A stretch of 64,000 bases of DNA from Hypanus sabinus (Eukaryota). Of the stretch, positions 17,520 through 50,118 are shown in pieces. Under the pieces are notes generated by a model, which was given only the letters and a program-made list of their open reading frames with translations, was not told where the DNA came from and ran no database searches. How positions within the stretch are numbered: the first letter of the stretch is position 1; every line of letters begins with the position of its first letter. The stretch spans positions 1 to 64,000 of the forward strand of contig NW_026781435.1 in assembly GCF_030144855.1 (NCBI RefSeq), in the 5' to 3' direction. Both the position numbers and the translations under genes were made by a program.

Positions 17520-17664
17520 ATGGATCATAAACTGCGAAATCAAGCCCTGAATACCGCGGGAATAGCGAAGTACTATTCCTGGGATTTGGATCTTCGAATC
17601 GAGCGAGTGCTAAAGAATTTACAACTGGTTTACTACCCTGTACTCGCCATTGTAGCTGTTCCTG
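17520..17664 (+). CDS. GPR139-like: GPR139-like receptor exon 1 (N-terminus and start of TM1), open but separated from its exon 2
   Basis: MDHKLRNQALNTAGIAKYYSWDLDLRIERVLKNLQLVYYPVLAIVAVP plus G, then GTAAGT. 145 nt, phase 1, homologous to 44961-45132. Confidence 0.85.
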
Positions 17665-17789
17665 GTAAGTGTATAGTCTCTTTCTCTTGATTAACGTTGA
17701 AAAATTATAAGCCAACTTTTGTTTCATATTTGTCCTCAAACGACACGCTAATCGCCAGGCAGGTCTCTCAAATGGGTATCGCTTCAGCA

Positions 17790-18517
17790 AATATCGGTTG
17801 AATGCATTTGATAAGGTGCTCCATGCAAGGCTTATTGAGAAAGTAAAGAGTCATGGGATGAAAGAGGACACTGCTTTGTTGACTACAACTGGCTTGCCCA
17901 CAGAAGTTAAAGTGTGGTTGCAGACGCGTCATGTTCTGCATGAAGTTCTGTGATCTTGGGACGTTGCTGTTCTAATGCATAGGACTCTCGAAGCTGCTAC
18001 GGAGGTTGACCCTACAGTTAGGAAGGCAGACGCTGAATTGGCCTTCATCAATGGAGTGATTGAATTTCAGAGCCGAGATGTAATTTTGCAGCTATATAAG
18101 ACCCTCGTCAGACAGCACTGGGAGTACTGTGGCCTCACAACAGGAAGCAGGTGGAGACCATAGAAAGGGTGCAAATGATATAGCCTGGACTGGGGAACAT
18201 GCCTTATGAAAATAGTTTGAGTGAACAGAGTCTATACACATTAGAGCGACGGGGTGTAATATACGACATGATAGGGGTGTGCAAGATGATGACAGGCATT
18301 CATCATGTGGATAGTCAGAGGCTATTATCCCAGAGCGGAAATGGCTTGCACGAGAGGGCACAGTTTTAAGGTGCTTGGAGTCGTCGAGAACAGATGTCAG
18401 AAGCACGTTTTTACGCAGAGAGTTTTGAGAGCTTTAAATGGGCTGCTGGCGACGTTTGTGGAGGTTGATCCGATAGGGTCTTTTAAGAGTCTCCTGGATA
18501 AATATATAAACATATAA
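17790..18517 (+). mobile_element. Old CR1 RT/3' fragment in the intron, shared with the intron of the intact gene
   Basis: FDKVLHARL and EFQSRDVILQLYKTLVRQHWEYC remnants. Homologous pieces at about 45270-48430. Confidence 0.75.
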
Positions 18518-18519
18518 CA

Positions 18520-21500
18520 ATCACAGCAAGGAAACAGGCCATCTCGGCCCTCCTCCTCCGTGCCGAACTCTTAATCTCACCTAGTCCGACCTACCCGCAC
18601 TCAGCCCATAACCCTCCACTCCTTTCATGTCCATATAACTATCCAATTTTACCTTAAATAACATAACTGAACTGGCCTCTACTACTTCTACAGGAAGCTC
18701 ATTCCACACAGCTATCACTCTCTGAGTAAAGAAATACCCTCTCGTGTTTCCCTTAAACTTCTGACCCCTAACTCTCAAATCATGTCCTCTCGTTTGAATC
18801 TCCACTACTCTCAATGGAAACAGCCTATTCACGTCAACTCTATCTATCCCTCTCAAAATTTTAAATACCTCGATCAAATCCCCCCTCAACCTTCTAGAGA
18901 CCTAACTTGTTCAACCTTTCTCTGTAACTTAAGTGCCGAAACCCAGGTAACATCCTATTAAATCGTCTCTGCACTCTCTCTAATTTATTGATATCTTTCC
19001 TATAATTCGGTGACCAGAACTGCGCACAATATTCTAAATTTGACCTTACCAATGCCTTGTACAGTTGTACCATTACATTCCAACTTCTGTACTCAATGCT
19101 TTGATTTCTAAAGGCCAGCGTTCCAAAAGCCTTCTTCACCACCCTATCTACATGAGACTCCACCTTCAGGGAACTATGCACTGTTATTCCTAGATCTCTC
19201 TGTTGCCTCTGCATTCCTCAATGCCCTACCATTTACCCTGTATTTTCTATTTGGATTATTCCTGCCAAAATGTAGAACTTCACACTTCTCAGCATTAAAC
19301 TCTATCTGCCAACGTTCAGCCCATTCTTCTAACCTGCATAAATCTCCCGGCACGCCTAGAAAACCCACCTCATTATCCACAACACCTCCTACCTTAGTAT
19401 CATTGGCATATTTACTAATCCAATTTACCACCCCATCATCCAGATCATTTATGTATATTACACACAGCATTGGGCCCAAAACAGATCCTGAGGCACCCCG
19501 CTGTTAACCGGCCTCCATCCCGATAAACAATTATCCACCACTACTCTCTGGCATCTCCCATCTAGACAGTATTGAATCCATTTTATTACACCAGCATTAA
19601 TACCTAATGACTGAACCTTCTTAACTAACCTTCCATGTGGAGCTTTATCAAAGGCTTTGCTGAAGTCCATATAGACTATATCCACTGCCTTACCCTTATC
19701 AACATTCCTCGTAACTTCTTCAAAAAATTCAATGTTTGTCAAACATGAACTTCCACGCACAAATCAATGCTGGCTACTCCCAATCAGGGCCTGTCTATCG
19801 AGATAATTATTAATACTATCTCTAAGCATACTTTCCATTAATTTACCCACCACTGATGTCAAACGGACAGGGCTATAATTGCTAGGGTTACTTCTAGAAC
19901 CCTTTCAAAACAATGGAACCACAAGAGCAATACGCCAATCCTCCGGCACAATCCCCGTTTCTAATGACATCTTAAAGATTTCCGACAGAGCTCCTGCTAT
20001 TTCTACACAAACTTCCCTCAAGGTCCTGGGGAATATCCTGTCTGGACGCGGAGATTTATCCACGTTTAAATTTCTTCAAAGCACCAGTACTTCCACATCT
20101 TTAATTGTCATAGGTTCCATAACTTTCTTACTTGTTTCCCACACCTTACACAATTCAATATCCTTCTCCTTAGTGAATACCGAAAAGGAGAAATCGTTCA
20201 GAATCTCTCCTATCTCCCTCGGCTCCACACATAGCTGACCACTCTGATTCTCTAAGGGGCCAATTTTATCCCTCACTATCCTCTTGCTTTTCATATAACT
20301 GTATAATCCATTTGGATTTACTTTCACCTTATTTGCCAAACCAACCTCCAATCTTCTTTTAGCTTTTCTAATCTCTTTCTTAAGATTCCTTTTACATTCT
20401 TTATATTCCTCGAGCAATTCCTTTACTCCATGCTGCCTATATCTACTGTATACATCCCTCTTTTTCCGAACCAAATTTCTAATATCCTTTGTAAGCCATG
20501 GTGCTTTCAAACCTTTAACCTTTCCTTTCAACCTAACAGGAACAGAAAGATTCTGTACCCTCATAATTTCACCCTTAAATGACCTCCATTCCTCCATTAC
20601 ATCCTTCCTAAAAAACAACTTGATCCAATCCACTGTCTCTAAATCACTTCGCATCTCCTCAAAGTTAGCCTTTCTCCAATCAAAAATCTCAACTCTAGGT
20701 CCTGTCCTGTCCTTCTCCATAATTATATTGAATCTAATGCTATTGGGATCACTGGACCCGAAGTGCTCCCCAACACATACATCTGTCAGCTGACCTATCG
20801 CATTTCCTAACAGTAGATCCAACACTGCCCCATCTCCATTCGGTACTTCTATGTATTGTTGCAAACAAACTATCCTTCACACATTTCACAAACTCTAGCC
20901 ATCCAGCCCTTTTACAGAATGAGCTCCCCAGTCTACGTGTGGAAAATTTAAATCTCCCACAATCACCACCTTGTGTTTACTACAAATATCTGCTATCTCC
21001 TTACACATTTGCTCTTCCAACTCACGCTCCCCCTTAGGTGGCCTATATTACACTCCTATCAGTGTTACTACCCCCTTCCCATTCCTCAATTCCACCCAAA
21101 TAGCCTTCCTAGAGGACCTCTCTAATCTATCCTTCCAAAGCAACGCCATAAGATTTTCTCGGACAAGCAATGCAACACCTCCTCCTCGGGCCCCTCCTAC
21201 TCTATCGCACCTGGCTACTGAATCCAGTAATATTTAGTTGCCAATCACTCCCTTCCTGCAACCATGTTTCACTAATAGCTACAATATCATAATTCCTGGT
21301 ATCAATCCACGCTGTAAGCTCATCCACCTTTCTTACTATGCTCCGAGCATTAAAATAGATACATTTAAGATACTCTCCTCTCTTTTCATCCCTAAGAATG
21401 CATTCAAATTTATTATCCTTTTCATTCTTCTCCCCCACATCTTCGGGCTGAGCGCATCCCTTCTCCATCACCTGTCTTTCCTCCCTCACACACTGTCTAT

Positions 21501-22200
21501 TTACTTGCTCTACTGGCGAACTAACTTCCTCTCCTATGGTTTCCTCAAATTGATACCCGCCCCCAACCCCATCTTACTAGTTTAAAGTCTGCCCTGTAGC
21601 CCTAGCAAACCTCCCCGCTAGGATATTGGTCCCCCCAGGATTCATGTGTAACCCGTCCTTCTTGAACAGGTCACACCTGCCCCAGAAGAGGTCCCAATGA
21701 TCCAGAAACATGAATCCTTGCCCCCTGCTCCAATCCCACAACCACGCAACCATCTTCCACCTAATTCCATTCCTACACTCACTGTCGCGTGGCACAGGCA
21801 TTAATCCCGAGATTACTACCTTTGCGGTCCTTCTTCTTGACTGCCTTCCTAACTCCCTATACTCTCGTTTCAGGACCTCTTCCCCTTTCTTACCTACGTC
21901 ATTGGTACCTACATGTACCACGACCTCTGGATCTTCACCCTCCCACTTCAGGATATCTTGGACGCGATCAGAAACGTCCCGAACCCAGGCACCAGGGAGT
22001 CAAATTACCATCCGGGACTCACGATCACCTCCACAGAACCGCCTGTCTGATCCCCTGACTATCGAGTCCCCTATTACTATGGTCCTCTTTCTTCTATCCA
22101 TACCCTTCTGAGCTATATGGCCGTCCTCTGTGCCGGAGACCCGGCCACTGTCACTTCCACCAGGAAGGCTGTTCCCCCCCCCCCAACAGTACTCAAACAT
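18520..22200 (-). mobile_element. CR1 LINE (ORF1 esterase and ORF2), 5'-truncated, antisense in the intron
   Basis: Long ORF2 pieces (262, 106, 102, 101 and 100 aa; YLKCIYFNARSIVRK, FSKAFDKAPHGRL, ISKYANDTK) and ORF1 GDSIVRGSDRRFCG / VHVGTNDVG. Confidence 0.95.
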
Positions 22201-23699
22201 GAGAAACATGAGTTACATGGAACTTAGAATAATGGAGATGTATGGGTAAATACGAGGAAATCTACAGATGCTGGAAATTCAAACAATAACACACACAAAA
22301 TGCTGGTGGAACACAACAGGCCAGGCAGCATCTCCGCAGCGCTCGGGCTGTCGGGATCCCGGTTAATTTTCGGTCAGGCAAACGTTATCTCTGCATCTTC
22401 TCCTCTCAAACACTTCCACCAACTGACCTTTCATACACATTCACTCCAAGAGAAGCAAGTCTGAGCGCACACAAACTCTGATCATAGGGAATGCTGTCCA
22501 ATCCAGTCAGATCTCTGCTGAATTCCTTCTGCGCTTCCTGTTAAGCTTACACGTCCCTCCTCTACTGAGGTGACCAGGACTTCTGATCTTTACGGCCCCA
22601 TAGAGATGAGTCCAGTTGTGTCAAGGCAGGATTAATCGACTTTGTGGAAGTTTGCTGGAAGGGGCCGCATCGCTGAATTAATTAAATAAATAAATAAATA
22701 GATGTCCTCATTTGTTATGGAGAATGAGGTCACGCTTGCATCATAACTGTCATGATCTATTGCCGCACAAAGGCTGCCGAGGAAACCGAGAGCCTGCAGA
22801 GGAATATAAATAGGATACGCGAATACACTAGCGTCTGGTGGATGCAGTAAAAAGTTGGAAATTACGAGGTCATCCACTTGGGAAGGACAAGTGGAGGAAC
22901 AAGAGATAAACAATTACAGGATGCTGCTGTGCGTAGGGACTTTTTTTCAAACACAAAAAGTTTGGTTTGCAGGTGCAGCATATCTGATGTTCGCCTTTGT
23001 AGCCAGAGGGAATGAATGTTCGAGCAGGGATGTTCTGCTGCATCTGCACAAGGTACTGGTGTGGATGCGTCAGCACTACCGTGCATTTCTGGCCTCCGAA
23101 CTTCAGTAAAGATAAACTGGCTGTGTAGATGGTTCACCGGCCGATTGCACATCGTGGTTCGACTATGACGAGTAATTGAGTCGCCCGGAACTGTACTCGT
23201 CGGAATCCAGAAGTATTATAGGAGATCAGATAAAAACATAAAGTTTTGAAAGCGATAGATAAGGTAGTGGCAGGAAAGTTGATACCACTGGTAGGTGAGA
23301 CTCGAAGTAAGGGACAGAGCCTGAAGATTCTGGGGAGTAAGTTTAGGACACTGATGACGGGGAGCTTCTTCTCCCAGCGGTTGGGGAATCTGTGGGATTC
23401 TCTGCTCAATCAATCAGTGGAGGCGACCGCAGTTGATATACATAAACAGCCTGGCATATCGTTTTGCATAGTGGAACGATTAAGGGCTGTGAAGAAAAGG
23501 CATGTTTGCGGCGATGAGCCCGATCAGATCAACCATGGTCACCATCATTGCCGTAGCATGCTAGTCCGAACAGATGGACTTTTCCTACTCCAATTGCTAA
23601 TATTCCGATATTCTCATGTTCCCGCATGTTTGCAGTTGAGGGGAGTTGAATTTATGTAAGCGTGGCACTTGGAAAATTAGTCAGTTCGTTATTAAATAT

Positions 23700-26600
23700 A
23701 TAACAATTACACCTCGGATACAAGCCATCTCGACCCTTCTAGTCCGTGCCGAGCGCTTACTCTCACCTAGTCCCACCGACGCGCACTCAGCCCATAACCC
23801 TCCATTCCTTTCCTGACCATATACCTATCCAATTTTACATTAAATGACAAAGCTGAACCTGCCTCTAACACTTCTACTGGAAGCTCGTTCCACACAGCTA
23901 CCTCTCCCTGAGTAAAGAATTCCCCCTTGTGTTACCCCTAATCTTTTTCCCTTAACTCTCAACTCAGATTCAAACTTTTGTCCTCTTGTTTGAATCTCCC
24001 CTAATCTCAATGTAAAAAGCCTATCTACGTCATCTCTGTCCATTGCCTTCATAAATTTAAATACCTCTATCAAATTCCCCTCAGCCTTCTCTGCTCTAAA
24101 GAATAAATAACTAACTTGTTCAAACAATCTCTATAAGTTAGATGCTAAAACCCAGGTAACATTCTAGTAAATCTCCTCTGTACTCCATCTAATTTAATGA
24201 CATCTTTCCTATAGTTCGGTGACCAGAACTGTACACAATACCCCAAATTCGGCCTCACCAATGCCTTGTAGAATTTTAACATAACATCCCAACGCCTATA
24301 CTCAATGCTCTGATTGATAAAGGCCAACATACCAAAAGCATTATTCATCATCCTACACACCTGAGAATCCACATTCAGGGAACTATGCACCATTATTCGA
24401 AGATCACTCTGCTCTACTGCATTCATCGATGCCCTATCATTGACCATATATGTCATATTTTGATTATTCCTAACAAAACGTAGCACCTCAGACTTACCAG
24501 CATTAAACTCCATCTGCCATGTTTATGTCCACTCTTCTAACTAGCCTAAATCTCTCTGCAAGCTTTGGAAACCTACTTCATGATCCACAACGCCACCTAT
24601 CTTAGCATCATCTGCATACTTGCTAATCCAGTTTATCACCCCATCACACAGATCAATAATGTATATGACAAACAATATTGGATCCCGATGATCCAATGTA
24701 CAGATCCCTGAGCACACCACTAGTCACCTGCTCCTAATCAGACCCTGTCTATCAAGATCATGAGACATACCGTCTCTACTGACGTCAAACCTACAGGCCG
24801 ATAATTGCTAGGTTTACTCTTAGAATCCTTTGTGAACAATGGAACCTCATAAGCAATGCGCCAATCCTCTGGCACCATCCTCGTTTCTAATGACATTTGA
24901 ATTATTTCTGTCAGAGCTATTGCTATTTCTACACCAACTTCTCTCAGGGTCCTAGGGAATGACCTGTCAGGATCCGGAGACTTATCCACTTTTACATCCT
25001 TTCGAAACTCTGGTACTTCCTCTCGTTTAATCATCATAGTTGCCAGAACTACCCTTCCTGTTTCCTTTATGTTACACAATACAATATCCTTGTCCTTAGT
25101 GAATACCGATGAAAAGAAACTGTTCAAAGTCTGCCCCCGTTTCTTTTGGCTCCACACATAGCTGTCCACTCGGATTCTCTAAGGGACCAATTTTATCCCT
25201 CACTAGCCTTTTGCTCTAATATAACTGTAGAAACCCTTTGGATTTAATTTCACCTTACCTGCCAAAGCAACCTTATATCTTCTTTTAGCTTTTCTAATTT
25301 CTTTCTTAAGATTCTTCTTACGTTCTTTGTATTCCTTCAGCACCTCATTTACTCCATGCTGCCGATACCTACTGTAGATCTTCCTCTTTTTCCGAATCAA
25401 TCTTCCAATTTCCCTTGAAAACAATGGGTCTCTGAAACGTTTAACCCTTTCTTTCAATTTAACAGGAACAATAAGGTTCTGTACTCTCAAAATGTCAAGT
25501 TTAAATGACCTCAATTTCTTTATTGCATCCTTTCCATAACGCAAGTTGTCCCAATCCACTCCTTCTAAACCCTTTCGCATCTCCTCAAAGTTAGCCTTTC
25601 TCCAATAAAACAAAAATCAAGCCTGGGTCCAGTCCTATTCTTCTCCATAATTATATTGAAACTAATGGTATTGTGATCACTGGACTCGAAGTGCTCCCCA
25701 ACGCATACCTCCCTCAGGTGACCTATCTCATTCCCTTACAGAAGATCCAGAACTGTCCCTTCTCCAGTCGGTACCTTAATGTATTGCTGCAAAAAACTAT
25801 CCTGCACTCAGTTTACAAACTCCAGACCATCCAGCCCTTTTACAGAATGGGCTCCCCAGTCTCTGTGTGGAAAATCAAAGTCTTCCACAATCACAACCTT
25901 GCACTTACGACAAATATCTGCTATCTCCATAAAAATTTGTTCCTCCAATTCTCGCTACCAATTAGGTGTTTTATAATACACCCCTGTAATTTGGACTACA
26001 ACTTTCCCATTGCTCAGTTCCACTCAAATAGCCTCCCTAGATAAGCCATCTATTCTGTCCAGCCAAAGCACCTCAGTAATATTTTCTCAGACAAGCAATG
26101 CAACAACTCCTCTGCTTGCCCCTCCGATTCTATTACACCTGAAGCAACGAAATCCTGGACTATTTAGATGCCAATCACACCCCTCCTGCAACCATGTTTC
26201 ACAAATAGCTACTCCATCATATTTCCAGATATCAATCCATGCTCTAAGCTCATCCAACTTTCTTACAATGATGCTCCTAGCATTAATATAGATGCTTTTA
26301 AGAAACTGTGCACCTCTTCCTCTCTGTTTATCCCTTCCGATTCCATCAACGCTATCATCTTTTTCTTCCTTCTCCCTACATTTTTGGTCTGAGCTCTCCC
26401 ATTCTCCATCAGTAGCCTAACATCCCTAACACACTTTCGACGAGCGTTCTTTATTTCTGAACTAACGTCCTCTCCCGTAGTCTCTTCAAATTGATTCCCA
26501 CCACCAACCATTCTAGTTCAATGTCTCCCCAGTAGCCTTATCAAATTTCCCCGCCAGGATATTAGTCCTCCGAGGATTCAAGTGTAACCCGAGATTACAA

Positions 26601-27100
26601 CCATTGCGGTCCTTCTTCTCAACGGCTTTCCTAACACCCTATAGTCTCCTTTCATGACCTCTTCCCTTTTCCTATCTTTGTCATTGGCACCTATACGTAC
26701 CACGACTTCTGGATCCTCACCCTCACACTTGAGGATATCTTGGACGCGATCAGAAACATCCCGAACCCGGGCTCCATGGAGGCAAATTACCATCCGAGTC
26801 TCCTGACCGCGTACACAGAATGGCCTATATGACCCCCTAACGATCGAGTCCCCTATTACTACTACCTTCATGTTCATTTCGTTGCCCTTCCTCTTCCTTT
26901 CCTTATCCTTCTGAGCTACAGGGTCGGACTCTGTGCCGGAGGCACGGCCACTGTTGCTTCCCCAAGGTAGGCTCTCCCCCTCAGCAGTACTCAAACAGGA
27001 GTACTTATTGTCAAGGGGTACAGCCACTGGGGTAATCTCTAGTAATCCCTTTTTAAATATTCCCCGCTTCACTGCCCGACGTCACACTCCTGCGCAGAGT
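23700..27100 (-). mobile_element. Second antisense CR1 LINE with internal deletions
   Basis: ORF1 VVVIGDSIVRGS; ORF2 SKPSNYRPVGLTSV and LGYCVQFWSPNYRKD. RT is shortened at about 24730. Confidence 0.92.
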
Positions 27101-27324
27101 TTTATCCTCTTAAAATTTACACTTTGCAAATGATTCTTATGGCGTCAAGATTAGAATACATCCCAGCCATCGAATGATATCACTGCTTAGCCCATCATGA
27201 ATTCGGCTAATCCAGAACTGAGCCTTCGCCGCCATTCAATAATAGCTAATTTATCATCACTTCCAGACATATTCTGACGCCCTTTCCGCGTATTAATTGA
27301 AGCCACGACGAATCAAGAGCCGAT

Positions 27325-27808
27325 TTCCCTATCTATGGAGACAGCATTACTTCTGATACATTCAATCCTCACCCCAATATTCCCCTTTGCCTTCATTCTG
27401 CTGCTCAACTGTTTAACCATCAGGTACGTTTTAGTGGCCAGCCGAGTCCGTAGGGGACTCCGTGGTACGCACGATGGGGAGACGCCCGCCGACCCTGAGA
27501 TGAAGAACCGCAGGCAATCTCTCTTGTTACTGCTGGTGATGTCGGGGAATTTCATATTCCTGTGGGCTCTGTTGACGGTGTTTTCCATATGGGAGGGTCT
27601 GATGTATTACATTGTCCGGATGCCCCCATTTTCTCTGCAGCATTTGGGCTACATGCTGCAAATAATGAGCTGCTGCACGAACTCGGCCCTTTACGCCGTG
27701 ATCCAGGCCAGGTTCAGGGTTCAGCTGAAGGAGACAGTCAAATCGCCCTTACGTCACATGGCAAAGTTCATTCGACAAAGTTGTGTGGACGGCATTAATC
27801 CTCGGTGA
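27325..27808 (+). pseudogene. GPR139-like: GPR139-like exon 2 fragment (ECL2 end, TM5-TM7, C-tail); no acceptor and no TM1-TM4
   Basis: Open frame METALLLIHSILTPIFPFAFILLLNCLTIRYVLVASR...MKNRRQSLLLLLVMSGNF...CCTNSALYAVIQARFR...GINPR*, colinear with about 49637-50118. Abuts intron sequence at 27324. Confidence 0.9.
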
Positions 27809-28430
27809 AGCTTTTCCCATACCGCCGCAAAAAAAATCCCATTTCGCCAGTCGCGTGTGCAATACCATTGGGGCTGTGGACGGCCCGATTAGCTCCCGCC
27901 CTCCGCCACTCCATGCTGGGCCACGATCGGAGCCATGCTCCCAATCTGCCTCCACTGCGCTCCTTCCAGTTTAAGTTCTTCACGAGTTCCCTGTAATGTC
28001 TACTTCATTTCCACCAAGTGTGTGTTTCTACCGTTACATGCATGCGAAGCTTTGACATCACCGTAGCAATACAACGTTTATGCCTTGCCAGCATTCCGTG
28101 CAGTCCGAAAGCCTATTCATGTACGCCCGATGTACTCCGTCTCTTTTCTCTCGCGAAAGCTTTTGGTTGCAAGAGCTCCAGCCATTGAAAGTTTCGGGAA
28201 ATCTGGTTACCATGGATAGTCTGCAAATGTCCTCTTCATCCGGGGTGCTTTGAAATATGTCTGTCACTTCGAGACTAATTCAGTAACTCGCGCTCATAAA
28301 ATCCACTCATCCAATCGTCGTTCCTCGGTCGCAAGCAGCAACTGCAATCGCAGTGCCTTCTGGGAATTAAATTAAATACTTGGACACTTTGTGCGGTTAA
28401 GGCCCAGTCTGTCGAATTGCATTTAGTACA
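27809..28430 (+). other. 3' flank copy FA (truncated)
   Basis: Aligns with about 50119-50720. ATTAAA at 28371-28376 sits at the position of AATAAA in the other copies. Confidence 0.8.
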
Positions 28431-28499
28431 TTGGGTGTTTCGGGCAGATGGTGCTCGTCATCCTGGGAAGGCAGTCCATCTAAGAGAAGGAATACTCTG

Positions 28500-29446
28500 A
28501 GGGAAGGTAATTGCTGAGCTAATAGCTCCGGCTGACTACTTATTTACTGAGATTCCGCACGAAATGTGAGATGTTGTCAGAAGTATGGCTGCCGAAGAAA
28601 CATTTTCAGTTGGTCTGGATACATCGGAGCTTTCTCCTGCTGAACCTTCAGGAATAGCATCTGGCACTGGAATATTCCTCCTGAGATACTGATTGGTACG
28701 TAACCCTCCGAAACGCCGATGCGCAACGCCACTGGGTCCCTGGTAGTCTCGCATTTTTCTTTGTCCGTTTGATTATCGACTGTTGTCCACATTTCCTGCC
28801 GCTACCTTTACAGCGTGACCGCCCGTGTTTCCTCGGCGTACACTTGTTTCCTGCCACACCACAAACACTATATCTTAATTGGTTAATTGTCCGTTCTCTA
28901 TTGAAAACACCCCTGTGGCAAATCATTTTGGGAGTTATTTCGCAGATCGTGGAACTGGGTAAGTGGCAATCACGCTGTGTGTGATTGGGGTAACCTTGTT
29001 GAAGCTACCGGTGTGTCTATCCTTGCCTGGGTGGTGGTTCGGTTAACGATGCCCCTCGCCCTTGTGTTAAGCTTCTGTTTAGTGATGTTTCGTGTGAGGA
29101 TTCCAAGGACAACGGGAAGACCGACAACATCTATTTGTTTGGATTACAAATAACTGTCTCACTTCAAATTCTGTACATTTGAACTGAACAGAAATTTCTT
29201 ACATTCCATCTTTAGACGGTAACGCTTGCCATCCGAGCTTGAATAACTTTGGGAACTTTATGTTTTTACACACACAGAGATGCATAATACTGACAACACT
29301 TGCTTTACCTGGTTTACGTAGTTAGTAATAAAATAATGATTGTTAACAGCAAAACCAGAAACCAGGCGTGTTCTATTGCTGCTGAAACTTTTACAGCGTT
29401 TCGTGCACATAAGAGGTACCTTCCCCAGGGTTGCGTGTACGTAACG
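28500..29446 (-). mobile_element. LTR (solo or partial), related to 33121-34311
   Basis: About 28900-29446 is the reverse complement of about 33121-33700. Terminus CGTTACG at 29446; the left boundary is approximate. Confidence 0.75.
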
Positions 29447-30195
29447 AGACAAAGCTGAACATTCTGTTATGACCTCATTCTTTTAATAAACCAAACTTCG
29501 TTCTCTTCATTTTCTCTATATTCCTAAAAATATTTCCTTTTCTCGTATTTTTCTATGGCTCGAGACCGAACTGTCGCATTTCTAACACAGATTAATAATT
29601 TCTCCGGCCAGATTACTAACTGGACTTTTACCAAGATCACTCAACATCCAGATCTCCATCGCGTTTGTGTCGTCTGCAAGAGTGTGTATGAGCCCCGCCC
29701 ATTTTCATCCAGGTTAAACGCCAGAACATTTCCAACAATTCTCACATGCAGAATTGGTGCCCTCCACAACTGTTCACTGTACTCTTTATTGAAGCTATGC
29801 CATCCAATGCAAATCGGTCTTATGTCTCACCCTACCGGAGCAGGACCTTCTCAACAGTCTTACTTACAGTCTAATCCCAACGGTCGTGCCCTGGCTGGCG
29901 CAATGTTTCACGGTCCGGGAGATCCTGCTAATGGGACAATTTACAATGACCAATTAAACTATCAACATATAGGTGTTTGATCTGTGGGAGGAATCAGGAG
30001 TACGCCGAGGTAATCACGGTTTATAGGCACAGGCGGGAAATTAGTGGAACGGCGGATAATCAACCGGAGAAGGAGAAAGCCCAAGCTACGAGGGAATCAG
30101 TAAATAAATAGAAATCATGTGCCCTTTCCCCTGCAATCACCTGCCACACATACCGAATATACTATTCGACAGATAGGATCACCACTAAAGGTTAA
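29447..30195 (-). other. 3' flank copy FC (inverted), belonging to the exon at 31544-32393
   Basis: Reverse complement aligns with about 50685-51420 and continues at about 31445-31590 beyond the LINE insertion. Confidence 0.85.
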
Positions 30196-31445
30196 GTCAA
30201 GTCAAGCCAAGTCAAGTCAGTTTTTATTGTCATTTCGACCATAACTCCTGGTACAGTCCACAGTAAAAACCAAACGTTTTTCATACCATTGGTCTACATG
30301 AAACAATGAACTCCAATGAACTATGTTAAACAGCACAAAAAAAAACTATTCTAGACTACAAACCCTCCCAGGACTTCATAAAGTGAACAAAAAATGCAAG
30401 TAGTACAGTAAATAAAATACAGGACAATAGGCACAGTAGAGAGCAGGAAGTGGTGTCAGTCCAGACTCTGGGTATTGAAGAGTCTGATGGCTTTGGAGTA
30501 GAAACTGTTACGCACTCTGGTCGTGACAGCCCGAATGCTTCGGTGCCTTTTGCCAGATGACAGGAGGGAGAAGAGTTTGTATGGGAGGTGCGTGGGGAAT
30601 AATGTTGTTTCCTTTGCGGGTGCAGCGCGTGTTGCAATTGTCTGTAATGGTGGGAAAAGAGACCCCGATGATATTCTGAGCTGACCTCATTGTCTGCTGC
30701 AGTGTCTTACGATCCGAGATGGTGCAATTTCCGAAACCGGCAGTGATGCAGCTGCTCAGGATGTTCTCAGTACAACCCCTGTGGAATGTGATGCGGATGG
30801 GGGTGGAAGATGGACTTGCCTCAGCCTTCGCAGAAAGTAGAGACGCTGTTGTGCGTTTTTTAGTTTTTTTTTTCTATGTTGAGGGACCAGGTAAGATTCT
30901 CCGCCAATTGAACACCAATAAATTTGGTGCTTTTAACGATCTCTGCCGAGGAGCCGTCGATGTTCAACAGAGAGTGGTCTGTCCATGCTCTCCTGAAGTT
31001 AACAGCCTTCTCATTTGTATTGTTCAGGATGTTCGGTCTGCATTCGCCCGTTTTCCGCTGCACCTCCTTCTCTATACACTGAATCGTCGTTGTTGCTGAT
31101 GAGACCCACCACCGTCGGGTCGTCGACGAACTTGAAGATGTGGTTCGATCTGTGTGTTGCAGCACCGCCGTGGGTCAGCAGAGTGAACAGCAGTGGGCTG
31201 AGAACACAGCCTTGTGGGGCCTTCTTGCTCAGTGTAATAGTATTGGAGATGCTGCGTCCGATTCCGACTCCCAGACACGAAGTCTATAAGTCTATAATAC
31301 AGTTGCAGAAGGAGGTGTTCAGGCTCAGTAGGTTCCGATTTAAAATCATTTTCTGAAGGAGGATTGTGTTGAATGCTGACCTGAAGTCTCTGAGCAGCAT
31401 TTGAAAGTATGTGTCTTTTCTGTCCAGTTAGGGCCAGGTGGAGGG
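30196..31445 (-). mobile_element. 5'-truncated Rex1/Babar-type LINE
   Basis: KFVDDPTVVGLISNNDDSVYREEVQ (FADDTTVVGLIS-type RT motif) near 31070-31140. (GACTT)n-like 3' tail at about 30196-30220. Confidence 0.8.
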
Positions 31446-31543
31446 AGTGCTGGAATTTCTTTAATTTCCAAGATGCTTTGCTATGGGGATTGATACTAGG
31501 GTCGAACGATTGAATGAGCCATTTACGAGTGCGAGTTATTAAC

Positions 31544-32393
31544 TTAATCTCCAGGGGTCCGACAGATCTCCAAAGAAATCCGCTGCAAGGGAGATTTCTC
31601 CGTCTTTTTGAACTGTAGCCTGAACTTGGTCTGGGCCACGGCATGAAGGGCCGTGTTTGTGCGGCATCTCAGCAGCTGAGAAATGTAGCCCAGTTCCAGC
31701 AGAGTATTCGGGGGGTTCTGCTTTAAAACAAATATACAGGAGATCCCAGACGGAATACACCGTCAGCAGCGCCCACAGCAGGAAGAGATTCCCCGACATC
31801 ACCAGCAGTAACAGCAGGGATTGTCTGTTGTTCTTCATCTCCGGGTCGGCTGGCCACTAAGACATGCATAATGGTTAAACAGTAGAACAGGAGAATCAGA
31901 ACAAAGGGGAATGTTGGGGTGAGGAAAAAATGAATCGCTTGCAATGTTACCAACTGAAGTGCGGAAAACAAACGGCCACTATCCAGGCAGTGCAAGGACA
32001 TAATTAAAGTCGAATATTTCCCAACGAGCATAAAGTACCAGAAAATGTTCTTTAAGCAGCTCAGCCCAGACGCTGTCCCCAGAACCAGAGCCGCCGCTCT
32101 CCCGGAGCAGTAATTTAGTTTCAGCTGCGGAAAACAAACGGTCACTCATCGATCAAAGGTGAAAGCGACGGTGAACCAGACAGAACAGTCTGTGGCAGCG
32201 TAGATTATGACGGCGTGAATATTACACACGGGAACACAAAAACTCCAGTAGTACATAATCGGAATCTTTCTCAAAACCAGTTCGAAGGGAAAGACTAGCA
32301 GTTCCGCTGCTACCATGGTAACCAGGTACCTTGTGACGCCTTTGGAGAGATCGCACTGCCGCCGCGACAGGATGAAGATTGTCACCACGTTCA
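31544..32393 (-). pseudogene. GPR139-like: GPR139-like exon 2 pseudogene (inverted partner of exon 1 at 17520-17664)
   Basis: Intact acceptor CACACAG|TGAACGTG at 32395-32393. VNVVTIFILSRRQCDLSKGVTRYL...FTFDR is followed by TGA (32146-32148). Further lesions: 47-bp deletion at 31846-31850, +1 C at 31710-31715 and loss of the native C-terminus. Confidence 0.92.
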
Positions 32394-32813
32394 CTGTGTG
32401 GAGGGGAATCAAGATTATTAACACAGATTCTGAATGAAATATTCTCTAAAAACAACTATTTTAATCGATATCATTTCCAGGCGCAGAAATGGACATGGAA
32501 TCGATGTATCTAATAAGGAGATAATCGGATCCATTATTAAATAGTAGTGACTATAATGTACCTGAAAGGTTCAGGTGAATGAAGGGAATCGCACTGAAAC
32601 CCATTGAATATTGAAACGCCGACATTTCGTGGACGTGGACAGCATAGCTACTGTAGTGGTTTAGTCTGAAACTAGAACATGAGGATTTACAAGACATCAC
32701 TTTGGACAGAGGTGGATAGAAATCTGTTTCGTCCGAGGCTAGTGAATATGAGAATTCCTCGCCACAGACGGCTATGGGAGTCAGTTCGTTCGATCCATTT
32801 GCAGCAGAGAGTG

Positions 32814-35010
32814 GCAGCCATTCTACTTGATACAATTGTTGGAAATGTTCTGGCGTTTGACTTGGATGAAAGTCGGCGTGACTGAAAAATACTCTTGCAG
32901 ACGACACAAAAGTGGTGGAATTGTCGATGTTGAGGGAGCTTGGTAACAGTCCAGTTAGAAATGTGGCAGGAGAAATGACAACTGGTATAGTAATACGACG
33001 GTTCGGTCTCGAACGGAAGAGAAATTCGAGAATAGGAACTGTTTTTAAAGAATATAGAGAAAATGGAGTGAGCAAATGATGGTTTCTGCTGAAGTATTAG
33101 AAGACTGTTCAGCTTGGTCGTGTTACGCACCGGCAACAGTGGAAAAATACCTCTAACGTGCACGCAACCCTGGGGAACGTACCTCCTACGAGAACACAAC
33201 ACTGTAAAAGTTTCAGCAACAATAGAACACAACCGGAGTCTGGTTTTGTTGTTAACAATCACTATTTTATTCGTAACTACGTAATATAGTAACTTAAACC
33301 GAGGAAGCCAAGGGTTATGCATATATAGGTGTGTAAAATATACAGTTACCAAACCCATTCAAGCTCAGCTGGCAGGAATTGCATTCTTACGATGGTATGT
33401 AAGAATTTTTTGTTTAGCTCAAATTTGAAGTGAAAGAGCGATGTTTTTCATCCAAACAAGGAGGTGCCGTCGATCTTCCCGTTGTCCTCTGAATATTTAC
33501 ACGAAACATCACTAACAGCAGCTTATCACAAGGGGGAGCATCGTCAAGTGAACCACCACACAGGCAATAGTCGACACACCGGTAAATTCCACAAGGTTAC
33601 CCCAATCACACACAACGTGATTACCACTTATCCAGTTCCACGACCTACGAAAAAACTCCAGCAGTGCTTTGCCACAGGGATGCCATTCCTCAGTGAACTA
33701 CTAGACCCAGACAAGGGGTAAACACACACGTGGTATTCACAAAGCTTTTCCCCTCACTGGTGAACCCACTCAAGCTGATTACCTCTTTGGCAACAACACT
33801 TTCGTATCCGAATGAAAATAAACTCACCCTCACAGGCTACTGGAACACAGAGTCCAAACAGAGATCTCTTTGTAACGAGGTTTCTTCTGTTTCAAACTTT
33901 CCCCTCCCCTCCTCTCCGTAAACTTAAACTAGTTGCAACAACTTGTGAGAGTCATTCAGCAATACACTGGATCGAGCTCAAATCACCCATTTCGGCGACT
34001 GAAATTTTAAAGCAGCGGCCGACTGCTTCCATTGTCTTCCATTGACCGAATCCATCTTGACTCTGACTGTGTGTCTTTGTGTCCTTGTGTATTCTAAAAC
34101 AAGCCGCAGAATAAAAAAAAGTAAGAGAACATTCATTGTTCATCTAATATCGTTTCTCTCACATCACAGCAACAGAGGAATTTTCATAGTCAGCAGTAAT
34201 CCACGCCGGGAGAAAGAGACTGACTTCAGATACTCATCTGAAGTCAGTCTCTTTCTCCCGGCGTTTTAAAGTGACAGTCCAAAGAAATATGAACCCAGGG
34301 GGTATATAATAGTCGAAACATCTGGTCGTGGACAGGTAATTCAGTGACTGGGCTGTCTGATTCACTCACCGGCAAGAATAAAAATTTCATACCGCGGTAA
34401 TGGACGGCAGGGAAGAAATCGTAGATGTTTTTTTTCCACGATTTTGATTCACCGTCACCTATTGTGAAGTTCTAACGTAGGTTTGTCTGCCGCCAGCAGA
34501 TGGCAGACTGTGACGCAGTGATTTTATGTTGGAAGCCAGGGATCGCATTTTAATCACAACTCATAAGGTAGAGTCCATAGTTAATGTCCGACAGTGAGTC
34601 CTTCTGGGGTTTGTGATATATAGAACTGAATCGGATGTCTGAAAAGAGGATGATTAATAATCTTGCAGATGACACAAAAAAAAAACATTTATTTACAAAT
34701 ATACACAAAGTGCGGGACAGTTTTCACGCGGTAGCTTCCAATTCACTCTACAGAGCAAGACGTTTACGCAGAGAGTAATGGGTACATGGGATGCACTTCA
34801 TGTTGTGGTGTTCGACGCATAAGGATAAGTGGCCTTTACGAGAAGCCGAGACAGACACGTATCTCTGAGGAAAATGGAAAGATATGCTCATTTGAACAGA
34901 AAATATTAGCTAACGATTATAGAAGCATTGAAAATCTACTGCACATTACAGGAACTTCGGACCACAATTGCTGTGCCGAGCATTTACTTACTTTATTAAT
35001 TACTTAGTCT
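32814..35010 (+). other. Orphan 3' flank copy FD (no coding exon attached), interrupted by a solo LTR
   Basis: Aligns with about 51115-51790 and 7030-7880, then continues into the shared antisense CR1. Confidence 0.8.
33121..34311 (+). mobile_element. Solo LTR with 4-bp target-site duplication
   Basis: Starts TGTTACG and ends ...TATAATA. GTCG at 33117-33120 is repeated at 34312-34315, and the flank resumes in register (GTCGAAACATCTG vs GTAGGAACATCTG at about 7333). Confidence 0.88.
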
Positions 35011-37500: not shown

Positions 37501-37649
37501 ATCGAGCTGCAGCTCCACACAGCGGTCCAGATATGTCCTCCAGCATCTGACACCGAGCTCAGAAATCCAGTCTCACACACATACTTCCTTACCGTAATTA
37601 ACACAGGCAAAGCTACGTCACCGTTGCGGACTGTGAGATTGTAGGATGT

Positions 37650-39480: not shown

Positions 39481-39789
39481 ATTTACTATGGACTTAGGTT
39501 CCTGTAGTCTGAAATCCGTGAGAGTTACGGACATTTTTAAATCAGTCTTTGCTTACGCTCAGTACCACGTTGAATGGTTGCAAATGCCGGTGATGTGAGG
39601 GAACTGATCGAAACTATGTGGAAAGAAAACGTGGTTTGCAGCTGTCAAGTCCGAATTAATGCGCTCGGCCCGTGATGTCGAGCGCTTATTTATGTCAAAA
39701 AATGCTGCCTGACCTGATGAGTTTTGTGTGTGACTCTGTTCTAAGTTCAGAATTCAAAGTATTATCAAAGTAATGACAATGCTCATAGA

Positions 39790-40932: not shown

Positions 40933-41099
40933 NNNNNNNNNNNNNNNNNNNNNNNNNNNNNNNNNNNNNNNNNNNNNNNNNNNNNNNNNNNNNNNNNNNN
41001 NNNNNNNNNNNNNNNNNNNNNNNNNNNNNNNNNNNNNNNNNNNNNNNNNNNNNNNNNNNNNNNNNNNNNNNNNNNNNNNNNNNNNNNNNNNNNNNNNNN
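40933..41099. other. Assembly gap (N run); other gaps at 55383-55512, 61649-61782 and 62506-62674
   Basis: N runs in the sequence. Confidence 0.99.
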
Positions 41100-44834: not shown

Positions 44835-44960
44835 TGTCCGGTATCCCTCACGACGACAGTTTCAGTGAGAGCCGCCAGCTTGCGGTATCAGAGATAAGCG
44901 ACTGTAGACAGAGAGAAGACAGAGGCTGGATCGGGAACAGGAGTCTGGACTATTCCAGCA

Positions 44961-45132
44961 ATGGATCAGAATCTTCAAAACACATCGCGCAGTGATGCGG
45001 CAATTGCTAAGAATATTTTCTGGACGAGTTCATATATGATTAATGTGCTGATGTGGGATTATCGAATCGCTGCTGCAATTGTGACATTCCAAGACGTTTA
45101 CTACCCTGTACTCGCCATTGTAGCTCTTCCTG
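44961..45132 (+). CDS. GPR139-like: Intact GPR139-like receptor, exon 1
   Basis: MDQNLQNTSRS...DVYYPVLAIVALP plus G (172 nt, phase 1), then GTAAGT. N-glycosylation sequon NTS. Confidence 0.9.
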
Positions 45133-45830
45133 GTAAGTGTCTCGTCTCTTCCTCAAGATGTTGTTGAAAAATATATGACAGCTTCTCTTCCATCCCTGTC
45201 CTCTAACGGTTCGCTAATTTTATATCAGGTCTTTCCAAACGGTTTCGCTTCAGCAAACATGGTCTGAGTGTATTTGACACGGTACCCCATGCAAGGCATA
45301 TTGAGCTAATAAGGAGGCATGTTATCCAAAGAGACTTTGCTTTGTGGCTCCAGAACTCGCTTCCCACTGAAGACAAAGAGATGATGTAGACGTGTCATAT
45401 TCTGCAAGGAGGTCGGTGGCCAGTAGTGTGCCTCAGTTATCATTGTGCTAAACTTACTCTTCCTGCTTTTTACAAAAAGGCCTGGATGTGGAAGTGGAGC
45501 GTTGGTTCAGTAAATGTGCTGGTGACACAGAGGTTGGAGCTATTGTGGATAGTGTGGAAGGCTGTCAGAGATTACAGCGAGACATTGATAAGATGCAATA
45601 CTGGGAGAGAAGTGGCAGATAGAGTTCAACGCAGATTAGTCCAAAGTGGCTCACTTTGGTAGATCAAACATGATGGCCGAATATAGTATTAGTAGTTAAG
45701 ACTGTTGGCAGTGTGGAGGATCAGAGGGTTTTTTTGGGTCCGATTCCATAGGGCGCTCAAAACAGCTGCGCCGGTCGATTTTGAGAGTGAGAAGGAATAT
45801 GGTGTATTGGCACCCATTAATAGTTGAATT

Positions 45831-46488
45831 TGTTATGAAGGATGAACAACTCCTATGGTTAGAAGGGTACACAATTGCCCATATATTTTTCCCTTCCCTA
45901 GGAGAATTACAACCCGTTACTGCTGCAGTGCTTCTAATGAGAGAGAAAGAGATGGAACAAAAATATACTGGGACTGTAACATTTGCTTCAGATAAGGGAG
46001 AGATAACACCGGGAGAGAGAGACTTGCTGTTCCACCATATTTTGACTCCTGAAAGACTTATGGCCCCGGAGAGGGCTGTTTACTTGGTACCATTCTGTAC
46101 ATTAAAATTCCACAGTGGACAGCCGGAGTGGGCCGGTTTGATGGACTAAGCCATTCAAAACTGATTGACACCTGAGACCCCGTGAGTACGGATAAAAGTG
46201 AGGACTGGGGAGACACCCCTCAGACACACCAGGAGACGCACCAGGATACAGACTAGTGAGCACTGCTTAAGTGTTGGAACCCACAAGAAAAGTGTTGGGC
46301 ATCGGAGATCGAACGAAGGATCGGTCAATTTTAACTCACAGTGCTTACAGCGAGGCAAGTGGGGGCTTGTCTGTGTGTCCACCCTTGCCTGGGTGACGAG
46401 TCCACCGTAGAAGAACGGTCTAGCTAAAGGCGAAAGGGGTCGACGGATCAAGAACGTAAAGGAAGGTTTGACTGACTGTCACTTTTTG

Positions 46489-46568
<80 letters not shown>

Positions 46569-46800
46569 AATTACAACACATCGACCAACAACCAACAACT
46601 ACCTCGGCCTGTATGAACAGAACTGAACTTTATATTCACTTATGAAAATTCATTATCCCCTCGACAACGATAGAGCTTGTTTATTGTATATTATTATTAT
46701 TACCCACACTTTTAGGTTTAGTATTGCCAACGTGTATTATCTTTATATTTGTATTGTGGATATTGATTTGTATATTTTACTAATAAACACTATTTTGAAA
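45831..46800 (+). mobile_element. 3'-truncated LTR inserted in the intronic CR1; related to the 54633-59086 LTR family; contains (CT)n at 46493-46565
   Basis: Starts TGTTATG. About 46260-46430 matches the reverse complement of about 58540-58720, and the host CR1 resumes at about 46805. Confidence 0.75.
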
Positions 46801-46804
46801 ATAG

Positions 46805-48520
46805 TGAATTTAGGAGCCGAGAGTTAATGTTGCAGCGATATAGGACAATGATTTGACCCTACTTGGAGTACTCGACTCAATTCTGGTCGCCTCACTACAG
46901 GAAGGATGTGGAAACCATAGTAAAGGTGCAGAAGAGATTGGCGAAGATGTTGACTGGATGGATTGGGGAACATGCCTTATGAAATCAGGTTGAGTGAACA
47001 CGGCCTGTTCTCCGCGAAGAGACGAAGGATGAGCAGTGACCTGATAGAGGTGTATCAGATGATGAGAAACATTGATCGTGTGGATAGTCAGAGGTTTTCT
47101 CCAAGTGCTGAAATGGTTCCAATAAGAGGACATAAGTTTAACGTGCTGGGATGCAGGTACAGAGGAGATGTCATGGGGAATTCGTTTATGCTGAGATTCG
47201 TGAGTGTGTTGAATGTTCTGCTGGCAACAGTGGTGGAGGCGGATTCGAGAGGGTCTTTTAAGAGACTTTTGGAGAGTTACTTGGAGGGTGGGAAAATAGA
47301 GGGCTGTGGGTAGGCCTAGTCAATCCTAAGATTGGGACATGTTTGGCACAACATTCTGCGCCGAAGGGACTGAATTGTGCTTTTGATTTTCTATGTTTCT
47401 AGATCAGCCATAATCACTGTCATTGCCTGATCTTGCCAGTCTGAACTGATGGACTATTCCTGCTCCTATTGCTAATGAACATGCCACTCCCCAATCTGCC
47501 TCTTTCCAACCCATCTCAATCTCCAATCCCTCTCCCACTAGACAATCTCAAATCTATATCTCACTCACCATTTTGAGTTTCCAATCCGTCTGACTCTCAA
47601 CAGACAAATTCTAACTGGCAAATGGAGTGTAACCCAGATAGGTGTGAGGCACATGGAGTTTAACTCAGATGAGTTAATTTTGTGGTTCATTTTGCTAGGT
47701 CAACTATGAAGGCGGAATATAGTATTAATGGTAAGACTCTTGGCAGTGTGGAGGATCAGAGGGATCTTGGAGTATGAGTGCATAGGACTCTCAAAGCAGC
47801 TGCACACGTTGACTAGTGGTTAAGGAGACGGACGGTGCATTGGCTTTCATCGATCCTGGAATTGAGTTCAGGAGCAGAGAGCTAATGTTGCAGCTATATG
47901 GGATCCTGGTCAGATCCCACGTGTAGTACTGTGCTCAGTTCTGGTCGACTCACTGCAGGAAGGACGTGGAAGCCACAGAAAGGGTGCAGAGATGATTAAC
48001 AAGGATGTTGCCGGGATTGGGGATCATGCCTTATGAAATCAGGTTGAGTGAACACTGCCTATTCTCCTCGAAGCAACAAAAGGTGAGCGGTGACCCGAGG
48101 CATTGATCGTCTGGATAGTCAGAGGATTTTGCCAAGTGCTGAAATGGTTGCCATAAGAGGACACAGGTTTAACGTGCTGGGATGCAGGTACAGAGGAGAT
48201 GTCATGAGGAATTCTTTTATGCAGAGAGTTGTGAGTGTATTGAATGTTCTGCCGGCAACAGTGGTGGTGGCGGATACGAGAGGGTCTTTTAGGAGACTCT
48301 TGGAGAGTTACATGGAGCTTTCAAAAATATAGGGCTGTCGGTAAGCCTGTCATTCCTAAGGTTGGGACATGTTGGACACAACGTTACGGGCCAAAGGTCC
48401 TGCATTGTGCTGTTGGTTTTTTATGTTTCTATGTTTCTAGATCCGCCATGATTACTTTCGTTGACAAATCACGCCAATCCGAACAGATGACTACACCTGC
48501 TCCTATTGCTAATGGTCTTA
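46805..48520 (+). repeat. Tandemly duplicated CR1 3' end plus flank within the intron
   Basis: About 46810-47480 vs 47880-48520 are highly similar, including non-LINE sequence past the tail (CCTGCTCCTATTGCTAATG in both). Confidence 0.8.
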
Positions 48521-49192
48521 CGTTCTCATTCTCTCTCGTGTTTACCGTTGAGCGGACATGAATTTATATCACTTTAATACATGGCATATTAATCAGTTTA
48601 TTATTTTCTTAACAGCTCCCTGTGTCCACTCCTTATTCTGACTTCAAAGATCAGAATATATTCCAGGTATCCACTAATATCCCTGATTAGCCCACAGGGT
48701 ACGACAGCTGAATTCAGCAATTCGAGCACCGAGCCGTCTCCATTATAGCTGATTTATCATCCCCCTGAACCACATTCTGGCGACCACTCCCCGTGTCCAT
48801 TGACACCCCGACGAATCATGAACCTATCACTCTCCGCTGCCAACAAATTGGCAACCATAGCAGTCTGTGGCGTTAAATTCCACACATTTAGCCGCCTTCG
48901 AGTAACGAAATTGTTCCCCATCTCTGTTCCAACGAGATTGGTTTACTTTTGTGAAGACTTGTTCTCAGAAGATTCCAATCCACGTCCACAATATTTCGGA
49001 CGTTCAAAATTCGATAGGTTTCCCTGAGAATCCCCTCAATATTTTGAACTTCAGCAGGTACATTATACTCCGAAATAGTAATGGCTCCCATATTCATCTC
49101 TGTTCTTGGAAGTGTTGTCGATTAAAACAATAGTTTATAGGGAAAGTTTTCATCAAAATATGTGTTAATGACCTTTATTTCTCTCCACACAG

Positions 49193-50118
49193 TAAACGTG
49201 GTGACATTAGTCATCCTGTCGCGGGGAAAGTGCGGTCTCTCCAAAGGCGTCACAAGGTACCTGGTTGCCATGGTAGCTGCGGATCAGTTGGTCGTTTTCT
49301 TCGATCTGGTTTTGAGCAAGATTCCGATGACTTTCATTCCAGACGAGTTTTTTCTCTGGTCCCGTCGTGTTCCTGTGTGTAATATCCACGCCGTCGTGCT
49401 CTACGCCGCCACGGACTGTTCTGTCTGGTTCACCGTCACTTTCACCTTTGATCGATTTGTCGCCATTTGTTTTCCGAAGCTGAAACAAAAATACTGCACC
49501 GGGAGAGCGGCGGCTCTGGTTCTGGGGACAGTGACTGTGCTGAGCTGCTTAAAAAACATTTTTTGGTACTTTTTTCTCGATGGGACATATTCGATATTAA
49601 GAACGTCCGTGTTGTGTTATAGCAGTAAACGCTTATTTTCCCCACCGAAGCTCGCAACATTTCTGATGATTCATTTCGTCTTGACCCCAATATTACCCTT
49701 TATCCTGATTCTGCTGCTCAACAGTTTAACCATCAGGCACGTCTTAGTGGCCAGCCGAGCCCGGAGGAGACTCCGTGGTCTGCGCGATGGCGAGACGCCC
49801 GCCGACCCGGAGATGAAGAACCGCAGGCAATCCCTCCTGTTACTACTGGTGATGTCAGGGAATTTCATCCTGCTATGGGCGCTGCTGACGGTGTCTTCCG
49901 TATGGGAGAGTCTCAGTGATTACGTTCCCTTGATTCCCCCTAAATCTCTTCGGGAGCTTGGCTACATGCTGCAAACGCTGAGCTGCTGCACCAACACCGC
50001 CCTTTACGCTGTGGTCCAGGCGAGGTTCAGGGTTCAGCTGCAGGAGACGGTGACAATTCCCTTCCGTCTATTGACAAATTTCACTCGGCGTTGTCAGGAG
50101 AGCATTAATCCTCAGTGA
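49193..50118 (+). CDS. GPR139-like: Intact GPR139-like receptor, exon 2 (spliced product 365 aa, 7TM class A)
   Basis: Pyrimidine tract and CACACAG acceptor at 49191-49192. G+TA restores Val in frame, and 172+926=1098 nt. Motifs: YLVAMVAAD (TM2), TDCSVWFTVTFTFDRFVAIC (TM3), LTPILPF (TM5), NTALY...RFR (TM7/helix 8). Family assignment is from remembered GPR139/142 motifs, not a search. Confidence 0.92.

Follow-up and report, generated by a model that had tools for sequence, protein, structure and literature searches.

Opposite orientation of the two exons of a GPR139-like receptor gene copy in the stingray Hypanus sabinus

Tandem arrays of receptor genes evolve by birth and death, and the dead copies within them are mostly described as carrying stops or frameshifts. 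Genes may also be divided by structural change, as in the F8 intron-22 inversion of haemophilia A, a recurrent event that proceeds via near-identical 9.5-kb repeats lying hundreds of kilobases apart. In Drosophila, inverted duplications of 46 bp to 1.9 kb stand at one or both breakpoints in 17 of 29 inversions, and in 12 of those 17 the duplicate is found at one breakpoint only, a pattern captured by a staggered-break model (Ranz et al. 2007, PMC1885836). Inversions flanked by copy-number variants (CNVs) are a standard class of complex variant in humans (delINV/INVdel and dupINV/INVdup; PMC5338099). Here we describe a receptor gene copy of the stingray Hypanus sabinus whose two exons lie in opposite orientation. 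It is found in a stretch of 64,000 nucleotides (NCBI RefSeq assembly GCF_030144855.1, contig NW_026781435.1, positions 1 to 64,000 of the forward strand), hereafter the window, where GPR139-like class A receptor genes form a tandem array with three units in head-to-tail order (self-BLAST).

The locus resembles each of these systems in part. Like the Drosophila staggered-break inversions, it has a non-repetitive 0.87-kb inverted duplicate at one breakpoint, of a size within the range described, but it is a micro-inversion within one gene unit and not a chromosomal one, and neither its 1.58-kb paralog fragment nor the good preservation of that fragment fits the simple staggered-break model. With the human CNV-flanked inversions it shares loss or duplication at one breakpoint, three novel junctions and clean non-homologous joins, whereas it is old, presumably fixed and 3.9-5.5 kb in size, and bears a paralog fragment at one junction; it may fall in either the deletion-flanked or the duplication-flanked class. 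As in the F8 inversion, an intronic break has left 5' and 3' exons in opposite orientation, but the stingray joins are non-homologous, and the repeat beside them reaches just about 80% identity. As in other birth-and-death arrays, genes of a fast-evolving class A receptor family stand here as a mixture of intact and dead copies; what sets the stingray copy apart is a structural break that can be mapped to the base.

The flipped block and its junctions

The flipped block is confirmed as an observation. An earlier note had claimed that positions 27325-32813, downstream of an exon 1 at 17520, form a base-precise inversion within a former receptor gene, and comparison with the intact paralog in the neighbouring unit bears this out. 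On the left, a BLAST alignment pairs 27147-27324 with 48647-48827 of the paralog and ends exactly at 27324/48827 (E=5e-13); on the right, the reverse complement read from 32813 downward picks up at paralog position 48828 and then continues into the splice acceptor and exon 2. The short junction strings on which the claim was built sit where the note had placed them, with 14 of 17 bases agreeing between 27308-27324 and 48811-48827, and 12 of 13 between the reverse complement of 32801-32813 and 48828-48840. When 27325-32813 is flipped in silico, a single high-scoring segment pair (HSP) extends from 27147(+) over the rebuilt junction to 31587(-) against 48647-50063 (1,491 columns, 69.5% identity, E=0; BLAST). 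Global alignment leaves neither gap nor overlap at the rebuilt join, the re-inverted sequence aligns continuously to 48640-49192, and the precision claimed for the break holds within about 1-2 bases. The start of the flipped exon 2 at 32393 also stands as given; the end of the reference span at 49192 is the G of the acceptor AG, and the intact exon 2 actually starts at 49193. The assignment of exon 1 at 17520 and the minus-strand exon 2 at 32393 to one former gene is supported, and the reading of a base-precise break that set them in opposite orientation is right in its core.

Shuffle controls support both sides of the break (z=34 for the left flank, z=9.4 for the right flank) and the rebuilt junction itself, over which a 60-mer has 40 of 60 ungapped matches (z=17.8), whereas the un-flipped continuation shows no match to the paralog and stays at noise level (z=1.3). 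The two breakpoints differ in kind. At the first, both sides are complementary at two junctions, 27324 corresponding to 48827 and 32813 to 48828. At the second they are not: the flip brings minus-strand sequence equivalent to paralog position ~49638 directly next to plus-strand sequence equivalent to 51118, so that the locus departs from a simple two-break inversion, and the partner sequence encoding transmembrane helices (TM) 1-4 is absent from the window. All three joins (J1-J3, Table 1) are clean within a few bases, as judged against paralogs 25% diverged.

The intact paralog used as the reference matches Pfam 7tm_1 (E=5.9e-19), and its protein is 79% identical to a Mobula protein and 72% identical to one of Hypanus sabinus, both annotated as 'probable GPR139'. 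On these matches it can be assigned to the class A (rhodopsin-type) G protein-coupled receptors, within a GPR139-like elasmobranch expansion. Its two-exon structure has a phase-1 intron inside TM1, exon 1 ending in ...AVP plus G and exon 2 starting with TA plus AAC; both exons are covered by the Hypanus protein P0004, which reads ...AIVAVPVNV... over the join and confirms the gene model.

Residues 1-77 of the same protein match exon 1 of the broken copy (tblastn). The last 30 nt of this exon (coding YYPVLAIVA...) and the donor region are identical at 44 of 45 positions between unit 1 (17628-17672) and unit 2 (45096-45140), and the rest of the exon has ~42% of amino acids in common and differs in length; the extracellular N-terminus of the receptor is hypervariable between the two units, and the start of TM1 is frozen. 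Three blocks of the unit 1 intron (17976-18498, 23526-23693 and 27147-27324) have their counterparts, in the same order, at 47779-48304, 48439-48605 and 48647-48827. This intron is swollen to 9.7 kb, compared with 4.1 kb in unit 2, by two decayed minus-strand copies of a long interspersed nuclear element (LINE; 18507-22203 and 23693-27001), which are ~79% identical and carry reverse-transcriptase fragments. The unit 2 intron holds tails of this LINE family in tandem (46805-47477 / 47863-48514), and such tails also lie inverted downstream of every unit.

Table 1. Positions of the broken gene copy, its junctions and the surrounding units in the window (ORF, open reading frame; UTR, untranslated region).
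Feature	Position	Strand	Description
Exon 1 of the broken copy	17520..17664	plus	Intact 48-codon ORF plus one base (phase 1); GT donor 17665-17666
Intron, 5' part	17665..27324	plus	Collinear with the intron of the intact paralog up to 48827
J1	27324/27325		Intron (paralog 48827) meets plus-strand TM5-TM7 fragment
TM5-TM7 fragment of a paralog	27325..28902	plus	Aligns to paralog 49638-50918; homologous from about 27325 (paralog about 49638) to about 28902, with the 3' UTR included
J2	about 28902/28903		TM5-TM7 fragment meets minus-strand block
Inverted repeat, left arm	28903..29761	minus	Downstream flank of the flipped copy, including 0.56 kb carried by unit 1 only
3' UTR and 3' flank of the flipped copy	29762..31573	minus	With 1.27-kb insertion 30188-31452
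Flipped exon 2, pseudogene	31574..32393	minus	Stop, deletions and insertion relative to the intact paralog
Flipped intron 3' end with acceptor	32394..32813	minus	Ends at paralog 48828
J3	32813/32814		Minus-strand block (paralog 48828) meets plus-strand downstream flank from paralog 51118
Inverted repeat, right arm	32814..33687	plus	From paralog 51118, in native order into the downstream region of the unit
Unit 0	1 to about 15000		Gene in view with 3' UTR and flank only
Unit 1	15795-37300		Unit with the broken gene copy
Unit 2	from 42947		Intact two-exon gene
Intact paralog (reference)	44961..50118	plus	Exon 1 44961-45132, intron 45133-49192, exon 2 49193-50118
Breakpoint equivalent in the intact paralog	48827/48828

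Two pieces of exon 2 and an inverted repeat

From J2 to J3 the minus-strand block is continuous, comprising the 0.56 kb specific to unit 1, downstream flank, 3' UTR, exon 2 and intron end. The flipped exon 2 within it is clearly dead. An in-frame TGA lies within the FDRF motif (32148-32146), an 18-bp in-frame deletion near 32255 has shortened the copy, the frame is shifted twice, by a 47-bp deletion near 31850 and by a 1-bp insertion near 31720, and a deletion of ~470 bp at 31587/31582 has taken the final codons, stop included, together with the first part of the UTR. Decay to this extent is roughly that expected from neutral drift since the duplications of the array. The plus-strand piece that now follows the intron, in contrast, holds an intact 157-codon ORF (27335-27808) with no stop and no frameshift, followed by about 1.1 kb of 3' UTR and flank. 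It matches Pfam 7tm_1 at profile positions 152-260 with 21.9 bits, under the gathering cutoff of 30.5 bits, and falls in the same GPR139-like subclade with 100% support.

This inequality is also seen residue by residue. Among alignment columns in which at least 90% of 120 homologs agree, the flipped exon 2 mismatches at 18 of 50, the TM5-TM7 fragment at 10 of 55 and the intact gene at 9 of 55; private departures number 11, 2 and 1, respectively. Unique substitutions are spread evenly over the three codon positions in the flipped exon (15/15/20, flat and neutral-like), compared with 14/4/13 in the fragment and 6/3/13 in the intact gene, and the bootstrap probability that the nonsynonymous divergence (dN) of the fragment equals or exceeds that of the flipped exon 2 is 0.04.

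The earlier note had proposed that the TM5-TM7 fragment came from another gene copy, and divergence in the 3' UTR fits such an origin. Here, over the same columns, the fragment differs from the flipped copy at a proportion of sites p=0.33, compared with 0.20-0.22 between the arms of the adjoining inverted repeat; coding p between fragment and flipped exon 2 is 0.275. Over the 352 UTR columns common to four copies, the fragment has 56 private changes compared with 19-27 in the others, and its Jukes–Cantor (JC) distances to the three unit copies (0.39-0.43) are about twice those among the unit copies (0.23-0.26), so that it was not copied from the flipped gene when the arms arose. The fragment is of a lineage different from that of the flipped copy, and its divergence fits an origin in another paralog. 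Two other sources were considered for the fragment and rejected. A processed retrocopy is disfavoured by the lack of an A-run near 28902 and of a target-site duplication flanking the piece, and by homology that continues about 280 nt past an AATAAA-like signal common to the copies; a single-event copy of the gene's own exon 2 should not be more diverged from the flipped exon 2 than the repeat arms are from each other, as the fragment is.

The note's account had missed the inverted repeat itself, which permits a history with neither a lost neighbour nor a deletion. Its 0.87-kb arms pair 28903-29761 with 33687-32814 at 74.5% identity (BLAST; 80% over non-gap columns) and adjoin a flipped core, 29762-32813, one arm running on into the block and the other into the flank outside it. 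A flip of this core alone yields a single HSP over the flank junction, from 30183(-) to 33119(+), against 50681-51424. Two different single flips, of 27325-32813 and of 29762-32813, thus each heal one junction. The arms have a common insertion boundary that is absent from units 0 and 2, and they group together weakly (5:1:2 informative sites); JC distance between them is 0.23-0.25, compared with 0.21-0.26 between units. The arms are therefore a duplicate specific to unit 1 and about as old as the units.

Histories of the break

We tentatively favour, at slightly less than an even chance, an inversion within a head-to-tail GPR139-like array that was accompanied by loss of the 5' half of a convergent neighbour. 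Under this history, the unit at 15795-37300 would once have held a normal two-exon gene, a collinear order for which the intact paralog in the window and the protein P0004, spanning both exons, provide the grounds. One break would have fallen in the intron, 365 bases upstream of the exon-2 acceptor (paralog 48827/48828), and a second would have parted TM4 from TM5 within exon 2 of a convergent paralog. The intervening DNA would have been rejoined upside down, so that exon 1 came to face the neighbour's TM5-TM7 half (27325-28902) and the gene's own exon 2 ended up pointing away on the minus strand (32393-31574). The same event would have removed the 5' half of the neighbour and whatever lay between that half and 32814, a loss of DNA at the right junction. 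We infer both the convergent neighbour and the right-junction deletion from missing DNA. The rearrangement is presumably a real germline event that became fixed.

Several features of the locus speak for inversion plus deletion. Inversion of 27325-32813 directly explains the complementarity at 48827 and 48828, the model leaves room for a fragment that stems from an older paralog, and the unequal decay of the two pieces fits a fragment cut recently from a working gene. If the same break orphaned both pieces, yet the TM5-TM7 fragment has barely decayed, then the flipped exon 2 was most likely dead before the break and did not belong to a working receptor gene when it was inverted; the neighbour, by the same reasoning, would have been complete and in use until then. 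The duplicated parts are 20-30% diverged, so the scaffold in which the break fell is old, and the near-intact state of the fragment suggests that the break, if this model holds, came much later than the array.

Several points weigh against it. The model needs vanished DNA, including exon 1, the intron and TM1-TM4 of the neighbour and probably further sequence, and tblastn found no trace in the window of TM1-TM4 or of a second exon 1 belonging to the fragment's gene. A minus-strand neighbour is not the local rule in an array whose three units in the window carry genes on the plus strand only. The adjoining 0.87-kb inverted repeat is left unexplained, so that an extra, older duplication is needed. 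Branch-wise ratios of nonsynonymous to synonymous divergence (dN/dS) are noisy and near 0.4-0.5 in all three copies, and in coding dS, where branch lengths are also noisy, the fragment is not the oldest lineage; dN/dS by branch proved too noisy for dating events. Minus-strand, intron-like pieces at 7741-8259, 34920-35314 and 51810-52200 were considered as relics of convergent genes in other units and rejected. They are LINE 3' tails, of the same family as those in the introns (compare ORFs 46963-47313 and 18581-18889), and as such they give no support for a convergent gene in other units.

The main alternative, which we consider rather unlikely, is an inversion with breakpoint duplication and captured filler, arising in one event by staggered breaks or replication template switching. 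In this scenario, the stretch between the intron break and the far end of the downstream flank, now at 28903-32813, would have been inverted, the 0.87-kb flank duplicated in inverted orientation, and a 1.58-kb copy of a paralog's TM5-TM7 region captured as filler at the left junction; a two-step version, in which filler and inverted flank copy were inserted in the intron before recombination between the arms flipped 29762-32813, is equivalent. The geometry of the repeat is what such an event would leave, in that the arms adjoin the block exactly, one continuous with it and the other with the outside flank, the flip of 29762-32813 alone restores a single HSP over the flank junction, and the arms share an insertion boundary as well as their grouping at informative sites. 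Divergence between the arms predicts about 12 private departures in the flipped exon 2, close to the 11 observed, and every base present is accounted for with neither a lost neighbour nor a deletion. The pattern is also a known one, both in Drosophila (PMC1885836) and among CNV-flanked complex variants (PMC5338099). Set against this is the preservation of the filler, which would match the arms in age (about 0.12 substitutions per site) and would have evolved neutrally since. About 13 private departures would then be expected in the fragment, where 2 are seen, and its 157 codons are free of stops and frameshifts. This is a serious conflict, and it stands unless the fragment was under selection or was refreshed by gene conversion.

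In a further reading, which we regard as improbable, the rearrangement would have made a new gene from exon 1 and TM5-TM7 that is still in use, a putative three-helix truncated receptor under purifying selection. The parts for such a chimera are present: exon 1 has an intact ATG, ORF and donor, a CAG at 27342-27344 is a possible acceptor that would join the phase-1 exon 1 in frame to the TM5-TM7 ORF, and this ORF has kept its native stop codon and, beyond it, the 3' UTR that belongs to it. The predicted topology would be native, with the N-terminus outside and TM5 running from outside to inside. Selection on the chimera would explain why the fragment keeps family-conserved residues despite the decay of the flipped exon 2, and under it the duplication-flanked, single-event inversion would fit all the data without lost DNA. 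No annotated chimeric or fragment protein was found among those of 86-275 aa compared with the 157-aa ORF, longer proteins lying outside the search.

Another improbable history is an old paired-duplication inversion followed by a recent deletion. An inverted copy of intron end, exon 2 and flank would have been placed downstream of an intact gene, the TM5-TM7 piece would be that gene's own exon 2, and a recent 810-bp deletion would have removed its acceptor and TM1-TM4. This would account for an old, dead flipped exon 2 beside a fresh-looking TM5-TM7 piece and exon 1, and on the plus strand the piece and the right-hand flank keep a collinear order that lacks just some 200 bp in between. However, it would take a coincidence for the deletion to begin precisely on the border of the duplicate (48827/48828), and the divergence of the fragment from the flipped copy in UTR and coding sequence lies about 3-5 standard errors above that of the arms. 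An assembly artefact, in which the assembler flipped a 5.5-kb block of a truly collinear gene, is improbable, given that both junctions are base-clean, that there is no gap or N run near either of them (the nearest N run is at 40933, 8 kb off), that self-BLAST of the window found no repeat of >86% identity near either (the flanking inverted repeat being just about 75-80% identical), and that the un-flipped structure would still hold an orphan TM5-TM7 fragment and a dead exon 2. The probability that these four histories leave over falls to more complex ones.

The receptor array and its annotation

The GPR139-like family to which the array belongs is very large in sharks and rays. Among 8,000 candidates scored, at least 1,352 matched at E<=1e-10, nearly all of them carrying the label 'probable GPR139'; they come from Heptranchias, Heterodontus, Pristiophorus, Mobula, Hypanus, Leucoraja and Narcine. 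In the literature, a search on GPR139 in sharks found nothing relevant to this GPR139-like expansion. The units of the window differ in further respects. Unit 0 carries a 6.1-kb insertion in the downstream flank of its gene (888-6988), bounded by a direct repeat of 80% identity (969-1717 / 6192-6966). A 1.2-kb insertion specific to unit 1 (33120-34316) has only a weak 4-bp GTCG repeat at its ends, and within it, at 34203-34264, lies a perfect 29-nt palindrome with a 4-nt spacer. Some 525 bp kept by units 0 and 2 (paralog 52102-52628) have been cleanly deleted from the downstream region of unit 1 at 35319/35321. No duplicates in the window are more alike than the pair 54635-55377 / 58163-58901 (85%), one copy of which ends just before a run of N at 55383-55511.

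For annotation, exon 1 at 17520, ORF 27335-27808 and the minus-strand exon 2 should be kept unmerged in gene models, and ORF 27335-27808 should not be counted as a receptor. The event would gain larger importance only if the chimera of exon 1 and TM5-TM7 proved to be expressed and conserved. As it stands, it is well resolved yet ordinary, a pseudogene in a birth-and-death receptor array. It provides a base-resolved example of an array copy broken by a structural event rather than by point mutation, and, for the cartilaginous fishes, a group in which breakpoint-level descriptions are few, a micro-inversion whose three junctions can be mapped.

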